Shown: positions 1,516-41,789, counted from the first letter of the stretch. The stretch: 43,696 bases of DNA from Macrostomum lignano (GCA_002269645.1 NIVC01001573.1:222802-266497); one strand, 5' to 3'. Program-made: numbers and translations. The notes: generated from the sequence alone by a model not told the origin.

Positions 1516-2003
1516 GCCAGACTCCGTCGAAACGCACCCTTTTCTTTCTTTCGCGTCAGAGCTCTTACGCTAATTTGCATTTCGAGTTGGAAGAATTAAA
1601 CGAGTTGAATTAAATGACGAATGCACCCTTGTCTCGAGCTGCTTTCTAGTTTTAAACAAACCTGCGATCTGTCCTAACCGAACTACTACTGTTTCATGGT
1701 CTAAAACTACTAACAGTAATACATGTAACATTTGTAAAACAGTGTTGCTCTATAAATCCCTTACTACGATTAAAAAATATACCCTTACTACGACATTAGT
1801 TTTTATACGACAATTGGTGATTGAATGGTGTTGTGAAGCGACAATAAAAAAGACAAAAAATAGCTTTTTCAAGCCAATTGCCTTTTGGACTAATAATTTG
1901 CGAGTAAATTTTACCGCAAAGTTGAATAGTTTATTGACCGCTTTGACTTAAAATATTTTCAGTGTGTTTGACGTCAAAGCAGCTGCACTGCCAATCTATG
2001 CAG

Positions 2004-2443
2004 TCAGCCTCCGAGCCCGAAGCAGGAGAGAGGATGGTAAATCGAAGAACAAAACCGCTTCTTCATCTGGAGCTGTTTGAACACCTGGACATCGTCCATC
2101 GGCTTCTCGCTGGCTGGAGGATTCTGTTGGCAAAAATGTCGGATTTATGGGAAAGTCTGTTTTTGCAGTAGAAAGCATGGTAGGATAGCCATTCCATTTC
2201 GGAGTTTTACAGTCAAGAAAATTCGAAATTGAAATAAGAAATTTTCGGACGATCTGGTTCAAAGCGGTTCGGATGGACATATACAGATGTTGAAAGAGCA
2301 GTGTCAAAAAAGAACAGTTTTAGTATTCTTACATGTCGCTCAACAGTTTCAGAACCCGGATCCTTGGAGTCAGAGATTCGAACTCCTTCGCCGGTCATCA
2401 GAGCCGACATACAGAAGACAACAATGCAATTTTGGATATTCAT
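2004..2443 (-). CDS. Secreted disulfide-loop peptide precursor, copy 1 (2 exons: 2443-2333, 2123-2004; 76 aa)
   Basis: Phase-0 intron CAT|GTAAGA ... CAACAG|AAT joins MNIQNCIVVFCMSALMTGEGVRISDSKDPGSETVERH to NPPASEKPMDDVQVFKQLQMKKRFCSSIYHPLSCFGLGG*. It has a hydrophobic N-terminus, a KKR cleavage site and a C-terminal Cys pair. The same structure is conserved in the paralog at 6004-6422. Confidence 0.7.
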
Positions 2444-3535
2444 AACTGTGTCAGCTGAGCAGATGAGCGTGTTGAATTTAATAGCCTGGGCTATGGACGC
2501 AGTAGACAGTTATATGCGCTCAGATGCTTGCACGATTCTTGAGCTGACTGACCCAGTTCGGCCAATTTTATTCGGATGAAGCTGCATGGGTTGTGCTGAA
2601 CGGCTAGCCAATCGCCGTTAGCAGGACCGAGGATTGAACGCTCTGGCCTTTGTTTTTGGGGCGGCGATCTGCGAGCTGTTGGCTGAGCTTATGCCAGAAA
2701 AAAATGTCGGGAGAGGAATTCCCCCCTTTTGTAGTTCTACTGTTCAGTTGATATTTACCTGCTATACACCATAGGGTCTTCCTAAGAGTTCTCTCTACTC
2801 AAATTTACTGCACATGCGACGAGCTTCTTCCTTTTGCTTTCTTTGCGGCTCAATTGACAGAATTACCAGATTATCAGAATGTCACTCCGCTGACTCCTGG
2901 GCACATACAACGCGTCAGACATGTGCACACTGTGCTCGATCCTTCTGAGCATTCTAATTGTCAGGAGATCTTGACCGATTCGTTAAACTGAGCATCGAGT
3001 CTTCTGATCGGCCGAACTCGTTGCCACACAAACCTATTTATCGAAAAGAGATTTTATTGTTCTCTGTGATTTTAGACCCCAAAACAGTTGACGACAGATA
3101 GAACCGTACAGTCGAATTGTAGAGAACCCAAAAGATAAATAAAGTAATCAAGTATAAAATCCAGAAAAAATGCCTACTAGCAGCGATTTGTAAACGTGCA
3201 GAGGCGGAAGTGAAAAAGGCAGTCTTACTCGCATGTTTCAATTGACAGCATTCCAGACCTTCAGCATATGTACGAATGTTTTACTCCAAGATTTTTATGC
3301 TTTCATTAGAACTTTAAGACAGCAACAAAACTCAGCAAAGCACGCAGTTGCAAAACTCTTAAATTTTAAAGCCTCACAGGGTGCGCCCCAAGGTTTGCAG
3401 CGGCTCGTTTTGCATCGGAAATCATATTCAGTGGGTCATGCATGCACTCGTAGTGTAATGGATCAGGATATACTTTGCTTATAAGCATTTAGATTCGGTC
3501 GCACTGCGTTTCAGGTTTTGCAGTGTAAAGCCGTC

Positions 3536-3888
3536 TTCAACCAGCAGCCAGTGTTCAACCAGCAGCTAGTTTTCAACCAGCAGCCAGTGTTCAACCAGCA
3601 GCCAGTGTTCAACCAGCAGCCAGTGTTCAACCAGCAGCCAGTGTTCAACCAGCAGCCAGTGTTCAACCAGCAGCCAGTGTTCAACCAGCAGCCAGTGTTC
3701 AACCAGCAGCCAGTGTTCAACCAGCAGCCAGTGTTCAACCAGCAGCCAGTGTTCAACCAGCAGCCAGTGTTCAACCAGCAGCCAGTGTTCAACCAGCAGC
3801 CAGTGTTCAACCAGCAGCCAGTGTTCAACCAGCAGCCAGTGTTCAACCAGCAGCCAGTGTTCAACCAGCAGCCAGTGTTCAACCAGCA
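3536..3888. repeat. 18-bp minisatellite (TTCAACCAGCAGCCAGTG), about 19 copies
   Basis: Near-perfect tandem units are directly visible; they generate the FNQQPV, CWLNTG and LLVEHW ORFs. Confidence 0.97.
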
Positions 3889-3938
3889 CTGTGCAGTGTG
3901 CACAAGAATTTTAATTGGAGCGGGCGCCAATGCTTGGT

Positions 3939-4783
3939 GTCTCTTGGTGAGCGCCCCTGTCTCTTGGTGAGCGCCCCTGTCTCTTGGTGCGCGCATCTGT
4001 CTCTTGGTGAGCGCCCCTGTCTCTTGGTGCGCGCATCTGTCTCTTGGTGAGCGCCCCTGTCTCTTGGTGCGCGCATCTGTTTCTTGGTGAGCGCCCCTGT
4101 CTCTTGGTGAGCGCCCCTGTCTCTTGGTGCGCGCATCTGTCTCTTGGTGAGCGCCCCTGTCTCTTGGTGAGCGCCCCTGTCTCTTGGTGCGCGCATCTGT
4201 CTCTTGGTGAGCGCCCCTGTCTCTTGGTGAGCGCCCCTGTCTCTTGGTGCGCGCATCTGTCTCTTGGTGAGCGCCCCTGTCTCTTGGTGCGCGCATCTGT
4301 CTCTTGGTGAGCGCCCCTGTCTCTTGGTGCGCGCATCTGTCTCTTGGTGAGCGCCCCTGTCTCTTGGTGAGCGCCCCTGTCTCTTGGTGCGCGCATCTGT
4401 CTCTTGGTGAGCGCCCCTGTCTCTTGGTGAGCGCCCCTGTCTCTTGGTGCGCGCATCTGTCTCTTGGTGAGCGCCCCTGTCTCTTGGTGAGCGCCCCTGT
4501 CTCTTGGTGCGCGCATCTGTCTCTTGGTGAGCGCCCCTGTCTCTTGGTGAGCGCCCCTGTCTCTTGGTGAGCGCCCCTGTCTCTTGGTGCGCGCATCTGT
4601 CTCTTGGTGAGCGCCCCTGTCTCTTGGTGAGCGCCCCTGTCTCTTGGTGCGCGCATCTGTCTCTTGGTGAGCGCCCCTGTCTCTTGGTGCGCGCATCTGT
4701 CTCTTGGTGAGCGCCCCTGTCTTTTGGTGAGCGCCCCTGTCTCTTGGTGCGCGCATCTGTCTCTTGGTGAGCGCCCCTGTCTC
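3939..4783. repeat. 20-bp minisatellite with two unit variants (CTCTTGGTGAGCGCCCCTGT / CTCTTGGTGCGCGCATCTGT)
   Basis: About 42 tandem units, frequently in an AAB or AB arrangement. Confidence 0.97.
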
Positions 4784-5792
4784 GTGTCTTTAGTTTTAAC
4801 CCTTTAGTCTCTTGTTAGCGCCCCTAACCCTGTCTCAGACAAGGACCACTATAGAAACACTTCGCGATAGTTCTAGTCTAGCAGTCCTTACTCCTAGACT
4901 GGCAGATGCCATGCCCAAGAGGTGGGCAGAGGTTGAGCTCCTGTCATTCGTCGAAGTTGGTTGCCTCCTTCATTTGATTTTTGGAGGAGCGCTATGTTTA
5001 TAGTGGTGACTGGTTTGGAGCCGAATCCAAGGTAGCTCGTACTTTTGCGATTAGTGCTACTAATAGTAGGTGTTGCAGATTAACCAAAGAAGTAGAATAT
5101 TCCATATATAGTTTCGACGCTCGTAAAAACATTCAAATGAAAGAGAGCTAGTTAAGTCAGCTTTATTGCCTTTAATGCTTCGGTGGATGCAAATTATCTC
5201 GTATTTTCTTTTGAAATCTGAAATTCAATCAAATTTCTTTGATATGCTATCGCTCTGCATGGAATACATTGCTCCAGCTGGAGTAATTATTAATTATCAG
5301 TTAAATTCGATTGCGAGGACACAGTACCTTCAGCTTAATTCCTTAAGTGTGCACCTATTGGGACTGTAGCTTGATTAAATTTCGAATGAGAATGAAAGCA
5401 TCTTGCCTGGGACCATGAGCGCACATCGGCGAATATGCATCAACTGGGACCGTGTGCACTTGTTAATTAAATTCGATCGCATGTATTCGAATGAGAGCAT
5501 ATTATAACGATCTGAGATTAACACATCTTTGCTGATTGAACGCCATGCATAATTGAGTAGCTTTCTGGTCTGGGCTATACTAGTTCAGCCAATGAGGTCT
5601 GGGTAAATTAGCTAATACTTCTTGGCTACTGGTTATTTGGTAGAGTTGCATGCCACCTGAGTTGTGTCCTTAATTCTAATTTATAAAAAATAAAATAATG
5701 AGCACGAACTCTAATTTATTTGAAGAATTTACTTGGCAATTGTATCCAAGACAGTGAAACGATTAATATGTGAGTTCTATTCCAAGGCATTA

Positions 5793-5824
5793 TTCGATCG
5801 TTCGTTCGTTCGTTCGTTCGTTCG
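5793..5824. repeat. (TTCG)n microsatellite
   Basis: Visible run ttcgttcgttcg... Confidence 0.85.
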
Positions 5825-6003
5825 ATAGGTTCAGAGCTTTAAGTCCTTAATAAAAACGACATAAAACTGCTTTTTCAGGCCAATTGCCTTTTGAATATTA
5901 ATTTTGCGAGTAGATTGAAACGCGAAATTGACTCGTATATTGAACGATTTAACTTAATATATTGTCAGTGTTCAAAGTCAGCTGCACTGGCAATCTTCTG
6001 CAG

Positions 6004-6422
6004 TCAGCCTCCGAGCCCGAAGCAGGAGAGCGGATGGTAATCCGAACAAAACTTTTTCTTCACCTGGAACTCCTTGAACACCGGGCCATCATCGTACGCC
6101 GGCTTCTCGCTGGTTGGAGGATTCTATATGGTGTGCAGCGGGAATGTGGAAAATGTTCCGTTAGCCATTCCATTCCCGAGTTGTTCAGTCAAAAAAGATT
6201 CGAAATTTGAATATGAAATCTTGATCTGGTGGTTTGGTTTGGAAGTGGTTTGGATACATGTAGATGTGAAAGAGCAATGTGATAAAAACATTTTAATAGG
6301 CTTATTTTTACATGTACCTTAACAGTTTCAGAACCCGGATCACTGGAGTCAGAGATTCGAAATCCTTCGCAGGTAATCAGAGCCGACATACAGAATAGAA
6401 CAATGTAAATTCGGATATTCAT
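6004..6422 (-). CDS. Secreted disulfide-loop peptide precursor, copy 2 (2 exons: 6422-6312, 6123-6004; 76 aa)
   Basis: MNIRIYIVLFCMSALITCEGFRISDSSDPGSETVKVH | NPPTSEKPAYDDGPVFKEFQVKKKFCSDYHPLSCFGLGG*. The donor is CAT|GTAAAA (alternative AAG|GTACAT, same phase) and the acceptor is CATATAG|AAT. Exon lengths are the same as in copy 1 (111 and 120 nt). Confidence 0.7.
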
Positions 6423-7389
6423 AATTGTGTCACCTGAACAGATGAGCCTTGTCGAATTTAATGACAGCGGTATATGGACGCAGAAAACAATATGCACTCA
6501 GATTCTGGCACGACTCTTGCGCTGAGTAATCCAGCTCAGTCAGTTTTCTTCAGATGAAGCAGGGTTGTGCTGATTGGCTAGCCAATCACCGTCAGCAGGC
6601 CCAAGGATTGAACGCCGCTGTGGCCTTTGTTTTTTGGGGTGGGTGATCCGCGAGCCGTTGGCTGAGCTGCGGTGTCTTGGGTGGGAGTGGGCGGCTGTGT
6701 GTGGGCCTTATGGGCCCAATTCGTAGTCTTATCTTGACTCGGATGGTCAGATCACAAACTGACAGATTTTAATTAAGTGTCGGTTACTTCCTAGTATACA
6801 AAAATGAGTTGTCTGTAGGTAGGTAGTTATGTGATTGATTTCAGAACGGCTCGACCAATTTCCAGGAAACTTACACCGTTCGATCAGAAATTTTTCTGTG
6901 AACGGTACATGTGCTAATAAATTGCTCAAGGCAAAAGCATTAAATATTCGAAAAACATGCTTTTTTGCAAGTGAATCAGACTTTTTGACTTGAAATGCAT
7001 TTCAAGCATGTTTAGATAAAAAAACGGACTGGCTGAATTCTGATTCCTGATAAAGATTGCATCACACCATGGTTTTTTATCGTCACTAATTTACTGGCTG
7101 AATTGTGAGTCCGACATAGATTGCGTCACAGTGTTAAAAACGGTGTAAATTCGAAGCACATAGCACCAAACTTTATTCAAATTGCATTCCATTTTTAACC
7201 TTAATGGAGACTGATTCTGACTGACTGAGAAATTGATTATGTCGATCATAACTGCTGTCGAACATACCTGGGTTCGAATCTTTGTAGTGTATTTTTTTAG
7301 TAAAAGCTTTTTTCAACGTAAGTGAAACTCAACGAAAGAAATAAAGAAAAATAGAGACAGGTTACATGTATGTCAACAACCATGAAAGA

Positions 7390-9498: not shown

Positions 9499-10304
9499 GA
9501 TTTTATTAGAACGATTTGAGAAATTGAGATTGAAAGCGATTGATTAAATATTGGTTTTTATTGGCGCTACGTCGACGATACGTTTGCCATCTTTGATCAG
9601 GAGCAAAAAATTGATCAGTTCCTCCACGCTCTCAACTCCACTCATAAGAACATAAAATTCACGGTTGAACATGCTGTTGACCAAAGACTCCCCTTCCTGG
9701 ACATTGACATTGACTACAGTAAGGAAACCCTCTCCACAAAAGTCTTCCGTAAGAAAAGCTTTACCAATCTCATTCTCAACTTCCAAGCCACTTGCCCCAG
9801 ACAATAGAAAACTGGGCTCGTGAGGTGTTTGCTCCATAGAGCTTTCACTACCTGTAACACCTAGATCAACTTTGACCAGGAGGTGCAGTTCCTCACCAGA
9901 CTGTTCCATCAAAATGACTACCCCATTTGTCTGGTCCAAAAAATCATCAACAAGTTCATCTTGGACAAAATCACCAAACAAAAACCTGAGCAATCTGTTA
10001 CCACTGAAGAATTTGAACCCATTCTGTGTCTCCCCTTCCTCGGACCTCCATCTCTAGCCTTTAAAAACAGAATGCGTAGGTTATTCTTTGCCTCTTTCAA
10101 TCGTAACATCCGGGTCGTCTTCCACATGAACAAGATTGGGAACTTTGTTAGCAGATTAAAGTCGCGTGTTCCTTGTACTCTGCGTGCAGGTGTTGTCTAC
10201 CAATTTAACTGCTCTGTGGACCAGAGCGTCTCCTACGTGGGGAAAACCAAAAGACACCTACACACGAGGATCAGGGAACACTGGCTCAAACCATCTGCTA
10301 TACA

Positions 10305-10864
10305 AACTCACCTCCTTGAATGCACTAACTGCAATGACTGCAAACCAGAAGAACACTTTAAACTCACCTCCTTGAATGCACTAACTGCAATGACTGCAAA
10401 CCAGAAGAACACTTTAAACTCACCTCCTTGAATGCACTAACTGCAATGACTGCAAACCAGAAGAACACTATAAACTCACCTCCTTGAATGCACTAACTGC
10501 AATGACTGCAAACCAGAAGAACACTTTAAACTCACCTCCTTGAATGCACTAACTGCAATGACTGCAAACCAGAAGAACACTTTAAACTCACCTCCTTGAA
10601 TGCACTAACTGCAATGACTGCAAACCAGAAGAACACTATAAACTCACCTCCTTGAATGCACTAACTACAATGACTGCAAACCAGAAGAACACTATAAACT
10701 CACCTCCTTGAATGCACTAACTGCAATGACTGCAAACCAGAAGAACACTTTAAACTCACCTCCTTGAATGCACTAACTGCAATGACTGCAAACCAGAAGA
10801 ACACTTTAAACTCACCTCCTTGAATGCACTAACTGCAATGACTGCAAACCAGAAGAACACTTTA
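10305..10864 (+). repeat. 56-bp tandem repeat, 10 copies, inside the PLE GIY-YIG coding region
   Basis: Unit AACTCACCTCCTTGAATGCACTAACTGCAATGACTGCAAACCAGAAGAACACTTTA; the first unit starts at 10305 and the last at 10809. Confidence 0.97.
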
Positions 10865-16200: not shown

Positions 16201-16333
16201 CAGAAGATGACAGCTCAAAAGCGAAATAATGTTCAGGAAAAACTAAACGCTACTGCTTATAGTACTACTAAGTAGCGAGTAGTGTGCATTTATTTTCAAC
16301 ATGAAACCCACAACCCGCACTCGAACAACCCAG

Positions 16334-16788
16334 GACCGCCTGTTCGACTGGCAGACGATGCGCAACCCCGACTTCGTCTGGTGCAGCCACTGCGGCACCG
16401 GCTTCGAGCTGGATGCCGAGGCCGGCCAGAACCGGTTCACCTGTCCCCGGTGCCGCCGGGACACCTGCAGGGAGTGCCGCAAGCCGTGGGAGAAGCAGCA
16501 CAAAGGACTCAGCTGCGAAGACTTCGAACGCTGGAAGCAGGAGAATGATCCGGAGTTCCAGACCAGAGGCGTCGCCTTCTATCTGCAGCAGCACGGCATC
16601 GAGTGCCCGGCCTGCCACTTCAAGTACGCCTTGGCTGGCGGCGGCTGCCTGCACTTTGTGTGCCGAATGTGCCGGGCGAATTTCTGCTCGGGCTGCGGCA
16701 ATCTGTTCCAGCATACGGACAGCCAGGGCCTGGCGTGCCGTCATCCGCGTAGCTGCCTCTACCATCTGAGAGATTTCGATATTGACAG
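16334..16788 (+). CDS. RNF31: HOIP/RNF31 exon 2 (IBR, RING2 with catalytic Cys, start of LDD)
   Basis: The acceptor is CCCAG|GAC (phase 0). The exon encodes DRLFDWQTMRNPDFVWCSHC...CRECRKPWEKQH...WKQENDPEFQTRGVAFYLQQHGIECPACHFKYALAGGGCLHFVC, closely matching human HOIP ([40 protein letters not shown]). The catalytic TGC is at 16646. The donor is AG|GTGAGA (phase 2). Confidence 0.93.
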
Positions 16789-16801
16789 GTGAGAAAAATT
16801 C

Positions 16802-19709: not shown

Positions 19710-20898
19710 GGAGCATTTCACCTGGAGGTTCCTTCAGAAAGAGACATTTCATCTGGTAGATTCCTTTTGACTAAGACAATTCACCAGGTAGATTCCTTTT
19801 GAATATGGCATTTCACCTGGTAGGTTCCTTTCAATGGGACATTTCACCTGGTAGATTCCTTTTAAATGGGATATTTCACCTGGTAGATTCATTTTGAATA
19901 TGGCATTTCACCTGGTAGGTTCCTTTCAATGGGACATTTCACCTGGTAGATTCCTTTTAAATGGGATATTTCACCTGGTAGATTCATTTTGAATGGGATA
20001 TTTCACCTGGTAGATTCATTTTGAATGGGATATTTCACCTGGTAGATTCATTTTGAATGGGATATTTCACCTGGTAGATTCATTTTGAATGGGATATTTC
20101 ACCTTATAGATTCATTTGGAATGGATATTTCACCTGGTAGATTCATTTTGAATGGGATATTTCACCTGGTAGATTCATTTTGAATGGGATATTTCACCTG
20201 GTAGATTCATTTTGAATGGGATATTTCACCTTATAGATTCATTTGGAATGGATATTTCACCTGGTAGATTCATTTTGAATGGATATTTCACCTGGTAGAT
20301 TCATTTGGAATGGGATATTTCACCTTATAGATTCATTTGGAATGGATATTTCACCTGGTAGATTCATTTTGAATGGGATATTTCACCTTATAGATTCATT
20401 TGGAATGGATATTTCACCTGGTAGATTCATTTTGAATGGGATATTTCACCTGGTAGATTCATTTTGAATGGGATATTTCACCTGGTAGATTCATTTTGAA
20501 TGGGATATTTCACCTTATAGATTCATTTGGAATGGATATTTCACCTGGTAGATTCATTTTGAATGGGATATTTCACCTGGTAGATTCATTTTGAATGGGA
20601 TATTTCACCTGGTAGATTCATTTTGAATGGGATATTTCACCTTATAGATTCATTTGGAATGGATATTTCACCTGGTAGATTCATTTTGAATGGATATTTC
20701 ACCTGGTAGATTCATTTGGAATGGATATTTCACCTGGTAGATTCATTTTGAATGGGATATTTCACCTGGTAGATTCATTTTGAATGGATATTTCACCTGG
20801 TAGATTCATTTTGAATGGGATATTTCACCTGGTAGATTCATTTTGAATGGGATATTTCACCTGGTAGATTCCTTTTGAATGGGACATTTCACCTGGCA
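19710..20898. repeat. 31/32-bp minisatellite (TTCACCTGGTAGATTCATTTTGAATGGGATAT)
   Basis: About 37 units, degenerate at the left end, abutting the next gene. Confidence 0.96.
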
Positions 20899-20923
20899 GA
20901 TAATTTTTGTCTCTCATCTGTGC

Positions 20924-23017
20924 ATGGCTTACAGTCTGTCCGCTCAGAGTCAAGCGGCTGCAGCCTCAATGCAGCCGCACCAGCAGCCAAATCTCCGTGA
21001 GGTTGAGATGTGCAGCTTCTGCGGCGACAATCCTGTGCAGCGGATCTGCTCAGAGCCCAGCTGCAGTCGCAATCGCCTGTGCAAAGACTGCAGCGTACTG
21101 TGGCACGGCCATCCGAATAGGAAAGATCATCGAGTTCATGACGTTAACGATGACAAAAATAGCTCGCACTATAACATGCCTCCGCAAACACGGATTATCC
21201 AGCACAGGGCCAAGACTTCTGAAAGTTCTATCCAGCGGCACAAGTCCTGTTTGCCACAGGAACGTCAATCGTCAACCATGCAGCGAACCTCCAGTGGCGC
21301 TCAATATGACACCCTTGCAGCACGAGCGCAAACCGCTGCAGAGGCTCCGGCTGCTATTGGCGGTGGTGTGGAGTGGCAGTGCGAGCACTGTACTTTCATG
21401 AACAGTCCTGAAAGTCCGGCTATTGACTCGACTCGGCGCCTACTTTGCGAAGTCTGTGGCAAAACAACTGATCGAGCTGTTGCTACTCAGAGGGCGCCAA
21501 TGTCTTTTGATAGCCAGCGTCCAGTTCAAGCTCCGCAGCAATGCCAGCAGCCTGATGTTGTTTTAAAACAACCGCAGTCTGTGGACAGCGCACTGGCAAG
21601 GGAGAGCAAGCGCCCAGTGTATTCTTCAACTACTGTGAGAGATTCGAATGGATTTGATCCGATGTCACAGCAGCAGTCTCAGACAAACTATTCAAGGCAA
21701 CATGAAGCCAACGGGCAGTCAGTTAATCAAAATGTCCTTCAACCACAATATGCGCAGCAACAACAGACCCAATCTAGTAGTTTAAGCTCTGCTCCAAAAA
21801 CCTCGTACGAGCAGTCTCGTGACCAAAAACACGAACCTTCACTCGATTCAGCTACAGATAATCCACCACTGCAGGCCGTACGCGGGGAACCGCAGGTCCA
21901 GCATCGTCTGAGACAGGAAACATTCCAGCAGATTCGCAACATGAATGCTCCTGATACAGAGAAGGAGCTTTTGCTAAGACTTGTCCAGGATCCAAAGTTC
22001 TGTAAATTTCGGCTAGACGATTTGGTGAAGGCTGTTCAGTCTGGCGGTGAGCTCGCTTACGAAGACGAGTTCATGCTTGCCTACCTGTGCAGCAAATGCC
22101 AGAAGTGTGAAAAACCCGAGCCTCGTCACTACCAAGTGTGCATGGCTCAGTGCTCTTGTCAACTGTGCTTTGATTGCTTTAGAAAGTTTGTGTTCGAGTG
22201 CCTCAACCCTGCTAGCAACATCAGCCCGAGTCGATTTTCTTGTCCTGGCTGTCAGCAGCCCAAGCCAGACGATGTGGAGCACTTTGCTACTCACATAAAC
22301 TTTCTGAGCTTGCAGCTTGAGCAGATCGTAGAGACTTGCAGCTGGGTTAGTGAAGCTGTCATTGCTGACTTTGAAAGGACTTCAGACGAATGCTGCCGTG
22401 AGTTGTCTATAAAGATAAGTAAATTTTCTGACACGCTGTCTTCCACTCAACCAGCTTATGATAGGCTAAACGCGAAAGGATTTTACTGTCCAGAATGCCA
22501 ATGTTTTTTTCCGAGTTCGAAATCCACCGCGGATCATATTGCATGCTACAGCTGCAAGCATTCATTCTGTCCTTGCTGCAACACCGCAAGTTCTATAATG
22601 CTGTCTAGCCATGAGAAGCAGTGCTTCTTTAAGTCTAAGAATGTCAGCATTTCCGTGCTACAGTTTATACTGAAAGAGTCTAAAATTCCTTTCGACAAGA
22701 CCGCCAGGCGCAGACGGAACAAAAGCTCATCCGAAAGGGGCGGAAGAAAGATCGTTGATGAGGAGTGGCGATGCTCAGCGATCGACTTTAAACATGGAGG
22801 TTCCGGTAGCGGTGGCTTTCTACAGTGCGAAAATCGAGTCTACAAGAAGGTTTGCGTCTGTGAGCGGCACTACAAGGAGTACCTGTTGGACTTGATCAAT
22901 GAGAACAATATCGTTATGGAAAACGTATGTTCGTCGTTATCGGCCTTTAAAATAAACTGGGTTGAAAGGGGTCGATATATGAAGAATTTCTTTAAAAGCC
23001 TTTTTTCCGACGGGTAG
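20924..23017 (+). CDS. HOIP-like paralog 2, intronless: B-box, NZF, RING1, no IBR, RING2 with catalytic Cys->Ala, LDD (predicted pseudo-ligase)
   Basis: B-box CSFCGD...LCKDCSVLWHGHPNRKDH; NZF WQCEHCTFMN...CEVC; RING1 CQKC...QCSCQLCFDCF...SCPGC. RING2-like CPECQCFFPSSKST-A-DHIACYSCKHSFCPCC aligns gap-free to CPACHFKYALAGGG-C-LHFVCRMCRANFCSGC. LDD ...CERHYKEYLLDLINENN. The start could be 20924 or 20969. Confidence 0.82.
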   Translation: MAYSLSAQSQAAAASMQPHQQPNLREVEMCSFCGDNPVQRICSEPSCSRNRLCKDCSVLWHGHPNRKDHRVHDVNDDKNSSHYNMPPQTRIIQHRAKTSESSIQRHKSCLPQERQSSTMQRTSSGAQYDTLAARAQTAAEAPAAIGGGVEWQCEHCTFMNSPESPAIDSTRRLLCEVCGKTTDRAVATQRAPMSFDSQRPVQAPQQCQQPDVVLKQPQSVDSALARESKRPVYSSTTVRDSNGFDPMSQQQSQTNYSRQHEANGQSVNQNVLQPQYAQQQQTQSSSLSSAPKTSYEQSRDQKHEPSLDSATDNPPLQAVRGEPQVQHRLRQETFQQIRNMNAPDTEKELLLRLVQDPKFCKFRLDDLVKAVQSGGELAYEDEFMLAYLCSKCQKCEKPEPRHYQVCMAQCSCQLCFDCFRKFVFECLNPASNISPSRFSCPGCQQPKPDDVEHFATHINFLSLQLEQIVETCSWVSEAVIADFERTSDECCRELSIKISKFSDTLSSTQPAYDRLNAKGFYCPECQCFFPSSKSTADHIACYSCKHSFCPCCNTASSIMLSSHEKQCFFKSKNVSISVLQFILKESKIPFDKTARRRRNKSSSERGGRKIVDEEWRCSAIDFKHGGSGSGGFLQCENRVYKKVCVCERHYKEYLLDLINENNIVMENVCSSLSAFKINWVERGRYMKNFFKSLFSDG

Positions 23018-34097: not shown

Positions 34098-35027
34098 ATG
34101 AAGAAGAAGGTGCTGCTCATGGGCAAGTCTGGTTCCGGCAAGACCAGCATGCGCTCCATCATCTTTGCCAATTTCATCGCTCGCGACACTCGCCGCCTCG
34201 GCGCCACCATCGATGTCGAGCACTCGCACGTGCGTTTCCTTGGCAACCTGGTGCTGAACCTGTGGGACTGCGGCGGCCAGGAGGCCTTCATGGAGAACTA
34301 CTTCGCCAGCCAGCGGGAGAACATCTTCCGCAGCGTCGAGGTCATGATCTACGTGTTCGATGTTGAGAGCCGCGAGTTCGAGAAGGACCTGCACTACTAC
34401 CAGACCTGTCTGGAGGCCATCATGCAGAACAGTCCTCAGGCTCAGATATTCTGCCTCATCCACAAGATGGACCTGGTGCCCGAGGAGCAGCGCGAGCAGC
34501 TGTACTCGCAGCGCTCCGAAGAGCTGCGCACCCTCAGCAAGCCGCTGCAGTGCCGCTGCTACGCCACTAGCATCTGGGACGAGACGCTCTACAAGGCCTG
34601 GTCCAGCATCGTCTACGCGCTCATCCCCAATGTCCGCCTGCTCGAGGAGAATCTCCGGCAGTTTGGCGACATCATCGACGCCGACGAGGTGCTGCTGTTC
34701 GAGCGGGCCACCTTCCTGGTAATCTCGCACTGCCAGCAGAAGCAGCACCGCGATCCGCACAGGTTCGAGAAGATCAGCAACATCATCAAGCAGTTCAAGC
34801 TGAGCTGCTCCAAGGTGGCCGCCGCGTTCCAGAGCATGCACGTGCAGAACAGGGCGTTCGGCGCCTTCATCGACCAGTTCACCGCCAACACCTACGTCAT
34901 GGTGGTTGTCTCCGACACGCACGTGTGCCCGGCGCTCACCATGCTGAACATCCGCAACGCCAGGAAGCACTTTGAGCGGCTCGAGCGGCCTGAGGACCGG
35001 CCGTCCGCACTGGGCCGCCCGCTGTAG
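34098..35027 (+). CDS. RRAGA: Ras-related GTP-binding protein A/B (RagA/B, Gtr1), intronless, 309 aa
   Basis: [60 protein letters not shown] is essentially identical to known RagA/B; the C-terminal roadblock region [13 protein letters not shown] is present. Confidence 0.97.
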
Positions 35028-35148: not shown

Positions 35149-35884
35149 CAGCCAGCCTCCCAGATCCTCAGTTGCTGGGCCAGCCTCCCAGATCCTCAGT
35201 TGCTAGGCCAGCCTCCCAGATCCTCAGTTGCTGGGCCAGCCTTCCAGATCCTCAGTTGCTGGGCCAGCCTTCCAGATCCTCAGTTGCTGGGCCAGCCTCC
35301 CAGATCCTCAGTTGCTGGGCCAGCCTCCCAGATGCTCAGTTGCTGGGCCAGCCTCCCAGATCCTCAGTTGCTAGGCCAGCCTCCCAGATCCTCAGTTGCT
35401 GGGCCAGCCTCCCAGATCCTCAGTTGCTGGGCCAGCCTTCCAGATCCTCAGTTGCTGGGCCAGCCTTCCAGATCCTCAGTTGCTGGGCCAGCCTCCCAGA
35501 TCCTCAGTTGCTGGGCCAGCCTTTCAGATCCTCAGTTGCTGAGCCAGCCTCTCAGATCCTCAGTTGCTGGGCCAGCCTTTCAGATCCTCAGTTGCTGGGC
35601 CAGCCTCTCAGATCCTCAGTTGCTGGGCCAGCCTCTCAGATCCTCAGTTGCTGGGCCAGCCTCCCAGATCCTCAGTTGCTGGGCCAGCCTCCCAGATTCT
35701 CAGTTGCTGAGCCAGCCTCTCAGATCCTCAGTTGCTGGGCCAGCCTCCCAGATCCTCAGTTGCTGGGCCAGCCTTTCAGATCCTCAGTTGCTGAGCCAGC
35801 CTCTCAGATCCTCAGTTGCTGGGCCAGCCTCCCAGATCCTCAGTTGCTGGGCCAGCCTCTCAGATCCTCAGTTGCTGGGCCAGC
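35149..35884. repeat. 28-bp minisatellite (CAGTTGCTGGGCCAGCCTCCCAGATCCT), about 26 copies
   Basis: Directly visible tandem units. Confidence 0.97.
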
Positions 35885-36454
35885 GTGGTTAATCAATTTT
35901 GAGTCTTGAATTTCATTGCAAGATTATTAACGTTTCATTGTATCTACTGTCAGTAATGGAGTAAGCTAATTTGGTAGTTTTTTGTTACTATTTTTCGCAC
36001 TATTGTCCCCAGAAGTTGGTGCAATTTGACGAAAAAAATCAAGCTCTTATTGCACTTCAAATGTATATCAATGACGTCACTACTTGCTATGTCAATCCGC
36101 TCGTATTCAGGACATTGCTTCAAATTTATTAACGTTGCTGTATTGTAGATCTGCAATTATTTTCCCCTGTAGAATCTGTACGCACAGACAGTGAAGCATT
36201 ATGCCCTGATTCTCTATTGATTTCACTATCCTATGAGTATGTAATAAACATCGCCATGCGTCATATATTGATAGGCTTTCGAATGTGAAGTTTGTATTGA
36301 AATTATTTTGTTTACATTTAGCTAAATACGCCGCTATACTGGATGTAGCAGTTCCTCGTTCCTGCGGTATCCGATTTATGAGATCGTCCATCTGATCAAG
36401 TCTCAATCCGATATAGTGATGTCCTTAAACCCTTATTATTTCGACCCAGAGACA

Positions 36455-37501: not shown

Positions 37502-40370
37502 AGGCTCACTTTTCACTGCTCACCTGAAAGGGTCACACTTCACTGCTCACCTGAAAGGATCACACTTCACTGCTCACCTGAAAGGATCACACTTCACTGT
37601 TCACTGAAAGGATCACACTTCACTGTTCATCTGAAAGGGTCACACTTCACTGCTCACTGAAAGAATCACACTTCACTGTTCATCTGAAAGGGTCACACTT
37701 CACTGTTCACTGAAAGAATCACACTTCACTGCTCACCTGAAAGAATCACACTTCACTGTTCACCTGAAAGGGTCACACTTCCCTGTTCACTGAAAGGATC
37801 ACACTTCACTGCTCACCTGAAAGGATCACACTTCACTGCTCACTGAAAGGATCACACTTCACTGCTCACCTGAAAGGATCACACTTCACTGCTCACCTGA
37901 AAGGATCACACTTCACTGCTCACCTGAAAGGATCACACTTCACTGTTCACTGAAAGGATCACACTTCACTGTTCATCTGAAAGGGTCACACTTCACTGCT
38001 CACTGAAAGAATCACACTTCACTGTTCATCTGAAAGGGTCACACTTCACTGTTCACTGAAAGAATCACACTTCACTGCTCACCTGAAAGAATCACACTTC
38101 ACTGTTCACCTGAAAGGGTCACACTTCCCTGTTCACTGAAAGGATCACACTTCACTGCTCACCTGAAAGGATCACACTTCACTGCTCACCTGAAAGGATC
38201 ACACTTCACTGCTCACCTGAAAGGGTCACACTTCACTGCTCACCTGAAAGGGTCACACTTCACTGCTCACCTGAAAGGATCACACTTCACTGCTCACCTG
38301 AAAGGATCACACTTCACTGTTCACTGAAAGGGTCACACTTCACTGCTCACCTGAAAGGGTCACACTTCACTGCTCACCTGAAAGGGTCACACTTCACTGC
38401 TCACCTGAAAGGATCACACTTCACTGTTCACTGAAAGGGTCACACTTCACTGCTCACCTGAAAGGGTCACACTTCACTGCTCACCTGAAAGGGTCACACT
38501 TCACTGCTCACCTGAAAGGGTCACACTTCACTGCTCACTGAAAGGATCACACTTCACTGCTCACCTGAAAGGATCACACTTCACTGCTCACCTGAAAGGA
38601 TCACACTTCACTGCTCACCTGAAAGGGTCACACTTCACTGCTCACCTGAAAGGATCACACTTCACTGTTCACTGAAAGGGTCACACTTCACTGCTCACCT
38701 GAAAGGGTCACACTTCACTGCTCACTGAAAGGGTCACACTTCACTGCTCACCTGAAAGGGTCACACTTCACTGCTCACCTGAAATGATCACACTTCACTG
38801 CTCACCTGAAAGGATCACACTTCACTGCTCACCTGAAAGGGTCACACTTCACTGTTCACTGAAAGAATCACACTTCACTGCTCACCTGAAAGGATCACAC
38901 TTCTCTGCTCACCTGAAAGGATCACACTTCACTGTTCACTGAAAGGGTCACACTTCACTGCTCACCTGAAAGGGTCACACTTCACTGCTCACCTGAAAGG
39001 ATCACACTTCTCTGCTCACCTGAAAGGATCACACTTCACTGCTCACCTGAAAGGATAACACTTCACTGCTCACCTGAAAGGATCACACTTCACTGCTCAC
39101 CTGAAAGGGTCACACTTCACTGCTCACCTGAAAGGATCACACTTCACTGCTCACCTGAAAGGGTCACACTTCACTGCTCACCTGAAAGGGTCACACTTCA
39201 CTGCTCACCTGAAAGATCACACTTCACTGCTCACCTGAAAGGGTCACACTTCACTGCTCACCTGAAAGGGTCACACTTCACTGCTCACCTGAAAGGATCA
39301 CACTTCACTGCTCACCTGAAAGGGTCACACTTCACTGCTCACCTGAAAGGATCACACTTCACTGCTCACTGAAAGGATCACACTTCACTGCTCACCTGAA
39401 AGGGTCACACTTCACTGCTCACCTGAAAGGGTCACACTTCACTGCTCACCTGAAAGGGTCACACTTCACTGCTCACCTGAAAGGATCACACTTCACTGCT
39501 CACCTGAAAGGGTCACACTTCACTGCTCACCTGAAAGGATCACACTTCACTGCTCACCTGAAAGAATCACACTTCACTGCTCACCTGAAAGGGTCACACT
39601 TCACTGCTCACCTGAAAGGATCACACTTCACTGCTCACCTGAAAGGGTCACACTTCACTGCTCACCTGAAAGGGTCACACTTCACTGCTCACCTGAAATG
39701 ATCACACTTCACTGCTCACCTGAAAGGGTCACACTTCACTGCTCACCTGAAAGGGTCACACTTCACTGCTCACCTGAAAGGATCACACTTCACTGCTCAC
39801 CTGAAAGGGTCACACTTCACTGCTCACCTGAAAGGATCACACTTCACTGCTCACTGAAAGGATAACACTTCACTGTTCACTGAAAGGGTCACACTTCACT
39901 GCTCACCTGAAAGGGTCACACTTCACTGCTCACCTGAAAGGATCACACTTCACTGCTCACCTGAAAGGATCACACTTCACTGCTCACCTGAAAGGATCAC
40001 ACTTCACTGTTCACTGAAAGAATCACACTTCACTGCTCACCTGAAAGGATCACACTTCACTGCTCACTGAAAGGATCACACTTCACTGCTCACCTGAAAG
40101 GGTCACACTTCACTGCTCACCTGAAAGGATCACACTTCACTGTTCACTGAAAGAATCACACTTCACTGCTCACCTGAAAGGGTCACACTTCACTGCTCAC
40201 CTGAAAGGGTCACACTTCACTGCTCACCTGAAAGGGTCACACTTCACTGCTCACCTGAAAGGATCACACTTCACTGCTCACCTGAAAGGGTCACACTTCA
40301 CTGCTCACCTGAAAGGGTCACACTTCCCTGTTCACTGAGAAGATCAAATTTCACTGAGCACTGAAAGGAT
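37502..40370. repeat. 26/27-bp minisatellite (TCACACTTCACTGCTCACCTGAAAGGG), about 105 copies, in ARIH intron 1
   Basis: Visible array with higher-order duplicated blocks. Confidence 0.97.
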
Positions 40371-40414
40371 TACTGTGAGTGGTCGCAGTTAACTAAAGCA
40401 CGGTAGTCACAGTT

Positions 40415-41377
40415 CACTGAGACACTGAAGAGAGGCTCACAGCTCACTGAGACACGGGAGAGAAGCTCACAGCTCACTGAGACACGGGAGAGAGGCTCAT
40501 AGCTCACTGAGACACGGGAGAGAGGCTCACAGCTCACTGAGACACGGGAGAGAGGCTCACAGCTCACTGAGACACTGGAGAGAGGCTCACAGCTCACTGA
40601 AACACTGGAGAGAGGCTCACAGCTCACTGAGACATTGGAGAGAGGCTTACAGCTCACTGAGACACTGGAGAGAGGCTCACAGCTCACTGAGACACTGGAG
40701 AGAGGCTCACAGCTCACTGAGACACTGGAGAGAGGCTTACAGCTCACTGAGACACTGGAGAGAGGCTCACAGCTCACTGAGACACTGGAGAGAGGCTCAC
40801 AGCTCACTGAGACACTGGAGAGAGGCTCACAGCTCACTGAGACACTGGAGAGAGGCTCACAGCTCACTGAGACACTGGAGAGAGGCTCACAGCTCACTGA
40901 GACACTGGAGAGAAGCTCACAGCTCACTGAAACACTGGAGAGAGGCTCACAGCTCACTGAGACATTGGAGAGAGGCTTACAGCTCACTGAGACACTGGAG
41001 AGAGGCTCACAGCTCACTGAGACACTGGAGAGAGGCTCACAGCTCACTGAGACACTGGAGAGAGGCTCACAGCTCACTGAGACACTGGAGAGAGGCTCAC
41101 AGCTCACTGAGACACTGGAGAGAAGCTCACAGCTCACTGAAACACTGGAGAGAGGCTCACAGCTCACTGAGACATTGGAGAGAGGCTTACAGCTCACTGA
41201 GACACTGGAGAGAGGCTCACAGCTCACTGAGACACTGAGAGAGGCTCACAGCTCACTGAGACACTGGAGAGAGGCTCACAGCTCACTGAGACACGGGAGA
41301 GAGGCTCACAGCTCACTGAGACACGGGAGAGAGGCTCACAGCTCACTGAGACACTGGAGAGAGGCTCACAGCTCACA
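40415..41377. repeat. 30-bp minisatellite (GAGAGGCTCACAGCTCACTGAGACACTGGA), about 32 copies, in ARIH intron 1
   Basis: Visible array; produces the 10-aa repeat ORFs. Confidence 0.97.
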
Positions 41378-41426
41378 TATAAGTGGATTGCTATCACAGT
41401 CTATACAGGCAGCCTTATCTAAACAG

Positions 41427-41626
41427 GAGGTCTGCCAGATTGTCCAGCTACCCAGCAGGGTACTGCGCCTTCTGCTCAGCAAATACCGCTGGGACAAAGA
41501 CCTGCTGTTGGAGCGATTCTACGAGCGCGAGCCGGAGGACTTCCTGGCCAGGCACAACATCCCGGCCAGTCAGTGGCGGATCGTCGCTGCCGCTCCCGCG
41601 GCACCGCAGGCGGCAGTGGCACACAG
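41427..41626 (+). CDS. ARIH1: Ariadne RBR ligase exon 2 (UBA-like)
   Basis: The acceptor AAACAG|GAG gives MHRIVQ|EVCQIVQLPSRVLRLLLSKYRWDKDLLLERFYE (human ARIH1 [32 protein letters not shown]). The donor is AG|GTTAGT (phase 2). An alternative acceptor lies at 41409. Confidence 0.8.
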
Positions 41627-41789
41627 GTTAGTGTGATTTGAGGTTCTGTGATGGAGCTCTGTGTGTGAGAGCTTCTTTGCGGGGAGAGCGGTATTGAAGA
41701 GGATATCAAAAGCATGGCTGTTATGTGGATGTAGACAAACTGAAAGTTTAATACTGGTTGTTAGCTAATATACCGAAAATTAGATAGGT

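Follow-up and report, generated by a model that had tools for sequence, protein, structure and literature searches.

A C-terminal disulfide peptide following a dibasic site is a recognised hallmark of somatostatin/allatostatin-C (SS/AstC)-type precursors, and the starfish SS-type precursor (ArSS) was placed in this family partly on the position of its C-terminal peptide (PMC4772807). Arthropod allatostatin-C peptides include pQIRYHQCYFNPISCF (lobster), SYWKQCAFNAVSCFamide and GNGDGRLYWRCYFNAVSCF (PMC6008092). Here we analysed a 43,696-nucleotide (nt) stretch of Macrostomum lignano, called the window below, and give all positions in the coordinates of this whole stretch. It contains two tandem minus-strand genes of two exons each, copy A (2004-2443) and copy B (6004-6422), whose spliced exons translate into products of 76 amino acids (aa) that end in a two-cysteine peptide. 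A sequence-only reading of the window had described them as a hidden pair of AstC/somatostatin-like precursors. The results presented below confirm the observation and partly support this first interpretation: A and B may be a lineage-restricted pair of candidate peptide-hormone precursors, a reading to which we assign a probability of roughly 0.5.

Structure of the two genes

Translation of the given exons reproduced the two paralogous genes, including the peptides quoted for them, in which the cysteines are spaced C-x8-C in copy A and C-x7-C in copy B. The coding features are as follows.

2333..2443, minus strand: copy A exon 1 coding sequence, aa 1-37, MNIQNCIVVFCMSALMTGEGVRISDSKDPGSETVERH (translation)
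2443 to ~2384, minus strand: copy A signal-peptide-like part, aa 1 to ~18-20 (hydropathy; AlphaFold helix 3-16)
2124..2332, minus strand: copy A intron, 209 nt, GT..AG, phase 0, CAT/GTAAGA ... CCAACAG/AAT (read from the sequence)
2004..2123, minus strand: copy A exon 2 coding sequence, aa 38-76 plus TGA (translation)
Parts of copy A exon 2, minus strand: spacer NPPASEKPMDDVQVFKQLQM; KKR 2063-2055; peptide FCSSIYHPLSCFGLGG 2054-2007; stop codon 2006-2004 (translation)
6312..6422, minus strand: copy B exon 1 coding sequence, MNIRIYIVLFCMSALITCEGFRISDSSDPGSETVKVH (translation, hydropathy)
6124..6311, minus strand: copy B intron, 188 nt, GT..AG, phase 0, CAT/GTAAAA ... CATATAG/AAT (read from the sequence)
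6004..6123, minus strand: copy B exon 2 coding sequence (translation)
Parts of copy B exon 2, minus strand: spacer NPPTSEKPAYDDGPVFKEFQV; KKK 6060-6052; peptide FCSDYHPLSCFGLGG 6051-6007; stop codon 6006-6004 (translation)

The full product of copy A is MNIQNCIVVFCMSALMTGEGVRISDSKDPGSETVERH followed, after the exon junction, by NPPASEKPMDDVQVFKQLQMKKRFCSSIYHPLSCFGLGG, and that of copy B is MNIRIYIVLFCMSALITCEGFRISDSSDPGSETVKVH followed by NPPTSEKPAYDDGPVFKEFQVKKKFCSDYHPLSCFGLGG. Exon lengths (111 and 120 nt) are the same in both copies. Because exon 2 of copy B lacks a methionine and has its frame closed by the acceptor TAG, it is expressible solely via splicing to exon 1. The last 12 residues had been taken to be identical between the two products; the actual number is 11 (YHPLSCFGLGG), the 12th residue from the end being I in A and D in B. 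No third copy was found in the window or in the second locus described below.

Two further observations concern the transcribed region. A stem of ~10 bp, GCUGACUGCA...UGCAGUGCAGC, overlaps the stop codon (window positions 1980-2012 in A and 5980-6012 in B) and is kept in 4/4 sequences from the two loci; its folding stability is no better than that of shuffled controls (z = -0.9 and -0.4). In addition, the introns contain a block of ~50 nt (2195-2243 in A, 6175-6220 in B) that is ~80% identical between the copies and is possibly a regulatory element or splicing signal; no stable RNA fold was predicted for it, the result being no better than for shuffled sequence.

Anatomy of the predicted precursors

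A strongly hydrophobic stretch covers residues 3-16; nine-residue Kyte-Doolittle means are 2.0-2.8 there and become negative afterwards. This agrees with the signal-peptide-like N-terminus proposed before, and the UniProt name of copy A is 'Secreted protein'. The hydrophobic run of ~12 residues is too short for a membrane span, and the T-G/C-E-G that comes after the hydrophobic stretch makes small residues available at -3 and -1. A polar, mildly acidic spacer of ~40 residues (7 D+E versus 4-5 K+R) then leads to KKR (A) or KKK (B), the terminal two-Cys peptide and the stop codon. Apart from the signal-like segment the pro-proteins contain exactly two cysteines, both within the C-terminal peptide (residues 62 and 71 in A; 62 and 70 in B). 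AlphaFold predicts helices at 3-16 and 48-65 only and no globular domain, with a predicted local distance difference test (pLDDT) score of 52. The mature peptide, which has no K or R in copy A, carries no charge and is not amphipathic. With the disulfide formed, the predicted monoisotopic masses are 1684.74 Da for A (1626.73 Da if amidated) and 1599.65 Da for B (1541.64 Da if amidated). The precursors therefore combine generic features of peptide-hormone precursors, namely a signal-like N-terminus, a putative convertase site, no folded domain and a terminal Gly, which are necessary but not sufficient for neuropeptide or peptide-hormone identity.

The same anatomy might belong to a secreted, intrinsically disordered protein of ~56 residues in which KKR/KKK is not cut and the loop is merely part of the whole. 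Such a protein would agree with the KKK of copy B, which is a weak convertase site, with the AlphaFold helix 48-65, which spans the basic site, and with a second conserved block, RISDSxDPGSETV (13/14 identical), that lies just after the signal-like segment and has no flanking dibasic site. The basic triplet, as the sequence-only reading had placed it, is however kept in 4/4 copies, directly ahead of the most conserved segment; moreover, no fold is predicted (pLDDT 52) and a disordered secreted protein of 56 aa would be without obvious stability. We consider this explanation most unlikely.

Comparison with somatostatin/allatostatin-C and elevenin

Precursors of the SS/AstC type resemble A and B in being small and having an N-terminal signal(-like) peptide, in placing their only disulfide-loop peptide at the extreme C-terminus, where a basic site immediately precedes it, and in having two Cys that form one loop, with an aromatic residue next after the second Cys. 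The Platynereis AstC precursor ends in ...KKR-QPVQCLVNIVSCW-KRK, the KKR being common to copy A, and arthropod AstC shares P-[IL]-S-C-F with both copies (PISCF versus PLSCF here). The human somatostatin gene has a similar layout of two coding exons with the intron in the pro-region. Several features differ, however. Cysteines are spaced C-x6-C in AstC, including AstCC/AstCCC and the annelid peptide, and C-x10-C in somatostatin, as compared to C-x8-C and C-x7-C in A and B. AstC terminates at CF or CW, whereas A and B add FGLGG (five residues) past the second Cys, and the precursors are 76 aa long versus 106-132 aa in the SS/AstC type. Annelid AstC, the nearest phylogenetic comparator, has CLVNIVSCW and no PISCF, which leaves the more distant arthropods as the match to PLSCF.

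Elevenin (L11; Platynereis PDCTRFVFHPSCRGVAA) has the C-x8-C spacing of copy A, from which copy B (C-x7-C) differs. It also has an aromatic-H-P...S-C core and a five-residue tail, x-G-[VL]-small-small, past the second Cys (non-amidated R-G-V-A-A in elevenin versus x-G-[LV]-G-G), and an alignment with one gap gives identity at 6/15 positions. A and B have neither the F-V-F core of elevenin nor the Arg that follows its second Cys. Furthermore, the elevenin peptide directly adjoins the signal peptide, with KR and a long C-terminal region behind it, whereas the A/B peptide is C-terminal after a spacer of ~40 residues.

Neither Pfam (E <= 10) nor a profile search of 1.84 billion representative proteins, carried out with A, B and their counterpart, detected a sequence relationship to SS/AstC or to elevenin. 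The precursor matched no Pfam family at this threshold, and the profile search returned no relative besides the gene itself. An SRCR-repeat protein that appeared in the profile search was rejected as spurious, as its eight weak repeats matched the signal and spacer region. A metagenome scan with back-translated exon-2 patterns gave 308 pattern matches, none of which was confirmed. The sole match to a degenerate DNA pattern for YHPL[ST]CFGLGG was found at positions 6385-6416 of a metagenome contig of 61.5% GC content (L002), which encodes ...SLYHPLTCFGLGGQD... there; we judged it a chance match, unrelated to the gene pair because it has no first Cys and no stop.

Membership of the pair in the SS/AstC or the elevenin family is thus unsupported: sequence homology is lacking, the cysteines are spaced otherwise than in AstC, and an elevenin would be expected at the other end of the precursor. 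By analogy, the architecture would work like that of SS/AstC-type prohormones, and we do not file the gene as a member. The two likenesses drawn in the sequence-only reading are unsupported or overstated. For AstC/somatostatin they consist in the precursor architecture and the five-residue PLSCF/PISCF resemblance, against which stand the Pfam and profile searches, the Cys spacing and the GLGG tail; for elevenin they consist in the loop of copy A and the tail, against which stand the x7 loop of copy B and the position in the precursor.

Duplication and conservation

The duplicated unit is ~850 bp long (1843-2689 versus 5849-6668) and 77% identical between the copies. Identity amounts to 88% for exon 1 and 86% for exon 2, but only 66% for the intron (54% with gaps counted), in agreement with the proposed conservation of splice structure, phase and exon lengths alongside divergent introns. 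It is 81% both for the 245 bp upstream and for the 3' untranslated region. A sliding window gave 87-97% identity across exon 1 and the mature-peptide codons, and 17-63% across most of the intron. The two coding sequences differ by just two indels, of 3 bp each, whereas the intron has several gaps of varied length, mostly not multiples of three. The features outside the coding sequence are listed below.

2444..2689, minus strand: copy A conserved upstream region, promoter plus 5' untranslated region (81% identity with the region upstream of B)
Motifs upstream of copy A, minus strand: ATTGG (inverted CCAAT) 2612-2608; CATATAA 2516-2510; TATTAAA 2483-2477
1930..1935, minus strand: AATAAA, putative polyadenylation signal of copy A, ~70 nt past the stop codon (function inferred)
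6423..6668, minus strand: copy B conserved upstream region (comparison with the region upstream of A)
Motifs upstream of copy B, minus strand: ATTGG 6586-6582; CCAAT 6577-6573; CATATT 6494-6489; TCATTAAA 6464-6457
5936..5963, minus strand: candidate variant polyadenylation signals of copy B, AATATA 5963-5958 and 5941-5936 (function inferred)

The copy A transcript would start at or before ~2485, because the UniProt model (P0003) begins 42 nt 5' of the ATG.

Public records and a second locus

A word-indexed search of 5.8 billion proteins with copy A gave a sole match, GenBank PAA67418.1, a 76-aa 'hypothetical protein BOX15_Mlig004101g1' of M. lignano that is 97% identical to A. Its gene lies on contig NIVC01001484.1 of assembly GCA_002269645.1 and spans 440 bp (111 + 209 + 120). 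A 440-bp span with a 76-aa product means that the 209-nt intron and the splice structure are shared with copy A. The Mlig_3_7 annotation, to which this model belongs, was built from RNA sequencing (RNA-seq) and transcript evidence only, using StringTie, TACO, TBONE and TransDecoder (PMC5730564), and therefore a spliced A-type transcript was assembled from real reads. UniProt A0A1I8H5L9 ('Secreted protein') corresponds exactly to copy A of the window plus 14 N-terminal residues translated from the 5' untranslated region, and shares a 90% cluster with PAA67418.1. Neither record contains functional annotation, a processing prediction or a family assignment. The description of the pair as hidden hence does not apply to copy A, which is public as A0A1I8H5L9 with PAA67418.1 as its counterpart; copy B alone is unannotated.

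A 20-kb stretch around the PAA67418.1 gene (L001) is colinear with the window, 93-94% identical to it overall, and carries an intact A-type copy and an intact, unannotated B-type copy (A' and B' below). Neither copy B nor its L001 counterpart is present in any of the collections searched. NIVC01001484.1 also encodes a RagA protein identical to that of the window; ~48 kb separate its gene from the peptide gene, as compared to ~32 kb between the RagA gene of the window and copy A. L001 is the duplicated or allelic counterpart expected in a neopolyploid genome, because it is colinear and 93-94% identical and has the identical RagA protein on the same contig. In L001 a 7-bp insertion, TACCTGG, is located directly 5' of the annotated ATG (L001 ~9990-10000) as compared to copy A of the window and both B copies, and alters the start-codon context.

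All four copies at the two loci keep 76 codons, the Cys pair, the basic triplet and YHPL[ST]CFGLGG. The A/B duplication is older than the divergence of the window and L001 loci, and neither copy has decayed. An old duplication without decay, together with the in-frame indels, argues for coding constraint. The gene pair is a pattern beyond chance, and the view that these are real spliced genes for small secretory-type precursors is supported.

Selection and alternative explanations

Ratios of non-synonymous to synonymous divergence (dN/dS) were calculated according to Nei-Gojobori, and all values rest on very few changes. Between A and B, residues 1-20 gave a dN/dS of 1.7 and the spacer one of 2.1, as compared to 0.20 in the segment made up of the basic site and the mature peptide. 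In the mature-peptide codons synonymous changes have accumulated while the amino acids are fixed. The data do no more than suggest that a conserved mature peptide contrasts with a variable spacer. A and A' differ by two non-synonymous changes and one synonymous change. Divergence at synonymous sites is significantly lower than in the intron (Fisher p = 0.008), which is not explained by protein-level selection; exon gene conversion, nucleotide-level constraint or exonic splicing signals are possible causes. Overall, the evidence of selection is weak.

These figures bear on the explanation that A and B are a young, lineage-restricted pair with little or no function, or a fortuitous open reading frame (ORF), the similarity of the copies resulting from recent duplication and gene conversion. 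The overall dN/dS of ~0.9 and the ratios of non-synonymous to synonymous changes (2:1 for A versus A', 5:1 for B versus B') are in line with it, the low divergence of synonymous sites is compatible with exon gene conversion, there are no homologues in the databases searched, and B is unannotated. We nevertheless regard it as very unlikely, given that the frame of 76 codons is open in 4/4 copies, that the coding indels are of 3 bp, that splice sites are intact and promoter blocks conserved, that both copies have escaped decay since a duplication older than the split between the loci, and that mature-peptide codons change synonymously while the amino acids hold.

Protein evolution that is near-neutral or fast except in the loop (dN/dS ~0.9 for the whole, above 1 for signal and spacer), a recent tandem duplication with changed loop length, and the lack of relatives beyond the species in very large databases would also suit an exocrine product. 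In this case gland, epidermal, gut or reproductive/seminal-fluid cells would secrete the cyclic peptide, possibly after processing, and its target would be outside the animal or in a mate, where it would be an effector in defence, adhesion or sexual conflict. Fast evolution, recent duplication and species restriction are typical of reproductive and effector genes, and the layout of signal, acidic spacer, basic site and C-terminal peptide also occurs in amphibian skin-peptide and cone-snail toxin precursors. On the other hand, the mature peptide has neither charge nor amphipathicity, unlike most antimicrobial peptides, and the last 11 residues are invariant between the paralogues, whereas in effector and toxin families it is usually the mature part that varies and the signal that is kept. 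A tentative place is left for such a product, which we see as somewhat unlikely. An antimicrobial reading of the 'Rana-box' type was dropped as the principal explanation because the peptide is uncharged.

We therefore return to A and B as candidate peptide-hormone precursors, a status that is supported because there is a spliced A-type gene model, four copies are intact, indels are in frame and exons are conserved over introns. For the steps past translation, i.e. signal cleavage, disulfide formation, convertase cleavage, amidation and a signalling role, we infer the following course. The hydrophobic N-terminus (residues 1 to ~18-20) would direct the protein to the endoplasmic reticulum and then be removed, and the remaining two Cys (62/71 in A; 62/70 in B) would close a disulfide. 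In the regulated secretory pathway a PC2-type convertase would cleave after KKR60 or KKK60, which would release a C-terminal cyclic 16-mer from A, F-c[C-SSIYHPLS-C]-FGLGG, and a cyclic 15-mer from B, F-c[C-SDYHPLS-C]-FGLGG. The terminal Gly may become an amide (...GLG-NH2), and the peptide would act as an intercellular signal, either a neuropeptide or a peptide hormone, probably via a G protein-coupled receptor.

Several points weigh against this assignment. The signal-like n-region of copy A has no positive charge, and the KKK of copy B is a poor convertase site. Whole-gene dN/dS between A and B is 0.92, the contrast between the mature peptide and the rest is not significant (p = 0.06 and 0.13), and B and B' differ by five non-synonymous changes and one synonymous change, giving a dN/dS above 1. 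Conservation is seen across a recent duplication only (dS ~0.16), within M. lignano. Even the RNA-seq-derived annotation has no entry for copy B. The gene id does not occur in the supplementary data of the M. lignano transcriptome papers examined, and neither it nor the peptide string was found in the literature searched.

Surroundings of the gene pair

The two peptide genes are separated by two minisatellites, an 18-mer at 3536-3888 (19.6 copies, 98% match) and, at 3938-4783 (846 bp), a 20-mer whose higher-order periods are 40/60/100 nt, which generate spurious ORFs of 125-381 aa on both strands; the same two arrays, with different copy numbers, are present in L001. Beyond copy B, an ORF at 9883-10431 (plus strand) has a weak match to a GIY-YIG nuclease (E = 4e-4, just below the Pfam cut-off) and is probably a degraded Penelope-like retroelement; GC content falls to 29-35% in the AT-rich stretch of 8-12 kb around it. 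Positions 12259-33392 are occupied by a tandem family of large genes for RBR/IBR-type E3 ubiquitin ligases, with matches to IBR PF01485 and PF22191 at 16301-16792 and to the HOIP-type RBR C-terminal domain PF18091 at 20879-23017, whose members have common N-terminal Cys-rich motifs and long E/R/K-rich repeats. An intronless ORF at 34098-35027 (plus strand) encodes a RagA/Gtr1 GTPase of 309 aa (PF04670, E = 2.5e-98). Further minisatellites at 35172-35909 and 40370-41300 yield long repetitive ORFs, and the latter array runs into an ORF with an ARIH1-type UBA-like domain (PF21235, E = 4e-11) at 41400-41636; an Ariadne-type E3 ligase gene therefore starts near 41.4 kb.

Significance for flatworm peptide signalling

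Flatworm peptide signalling governs growth, regeneration and germline development, and M. lignano is a transgenic flatworm model. The planarian germline needs peptide hormones (PMC2953531), and the M. lignano PC2 homologue is expressed in the nervous system and needed for post-embryonic development, its knock-down being lethal (PMC4490696). BLAST-based annotation labels some flatworm transcripts as allatostatin/somatostatin-like receptors (PMC3022928), and a receptor class for the A/B peptide would be available in flatworms in principle, which we take as a lead only. No disulfide-loop ligand of the SS/AstC or elevenin type was found for flatworms in the searchable literature. That the pair is the missing flatworm ligand of an ancestral bilaterian disulfide-loop system (SS/AstC, or an elevenin moved to the C-terminus), with a remodelled x8/x7 loop and an amidated GLG tail, appears to us quite unlikely. 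If true, it would be the first identified peptide of this ancestral system in Platyhelminthes, and it would mean that recent paralogues can come to differ in loop length and still keep their function.

At present the claim is a modest one, that of a candidate whose copy A is already in databases as an uncharacterised protein. The compact locus of two genes with a defined conserved promoter of ~250 bp makes an easy experimental target, and even if the peptides are not neuronal the pair would still be an example of a fast-evolving, species-restricted secreted peptide.

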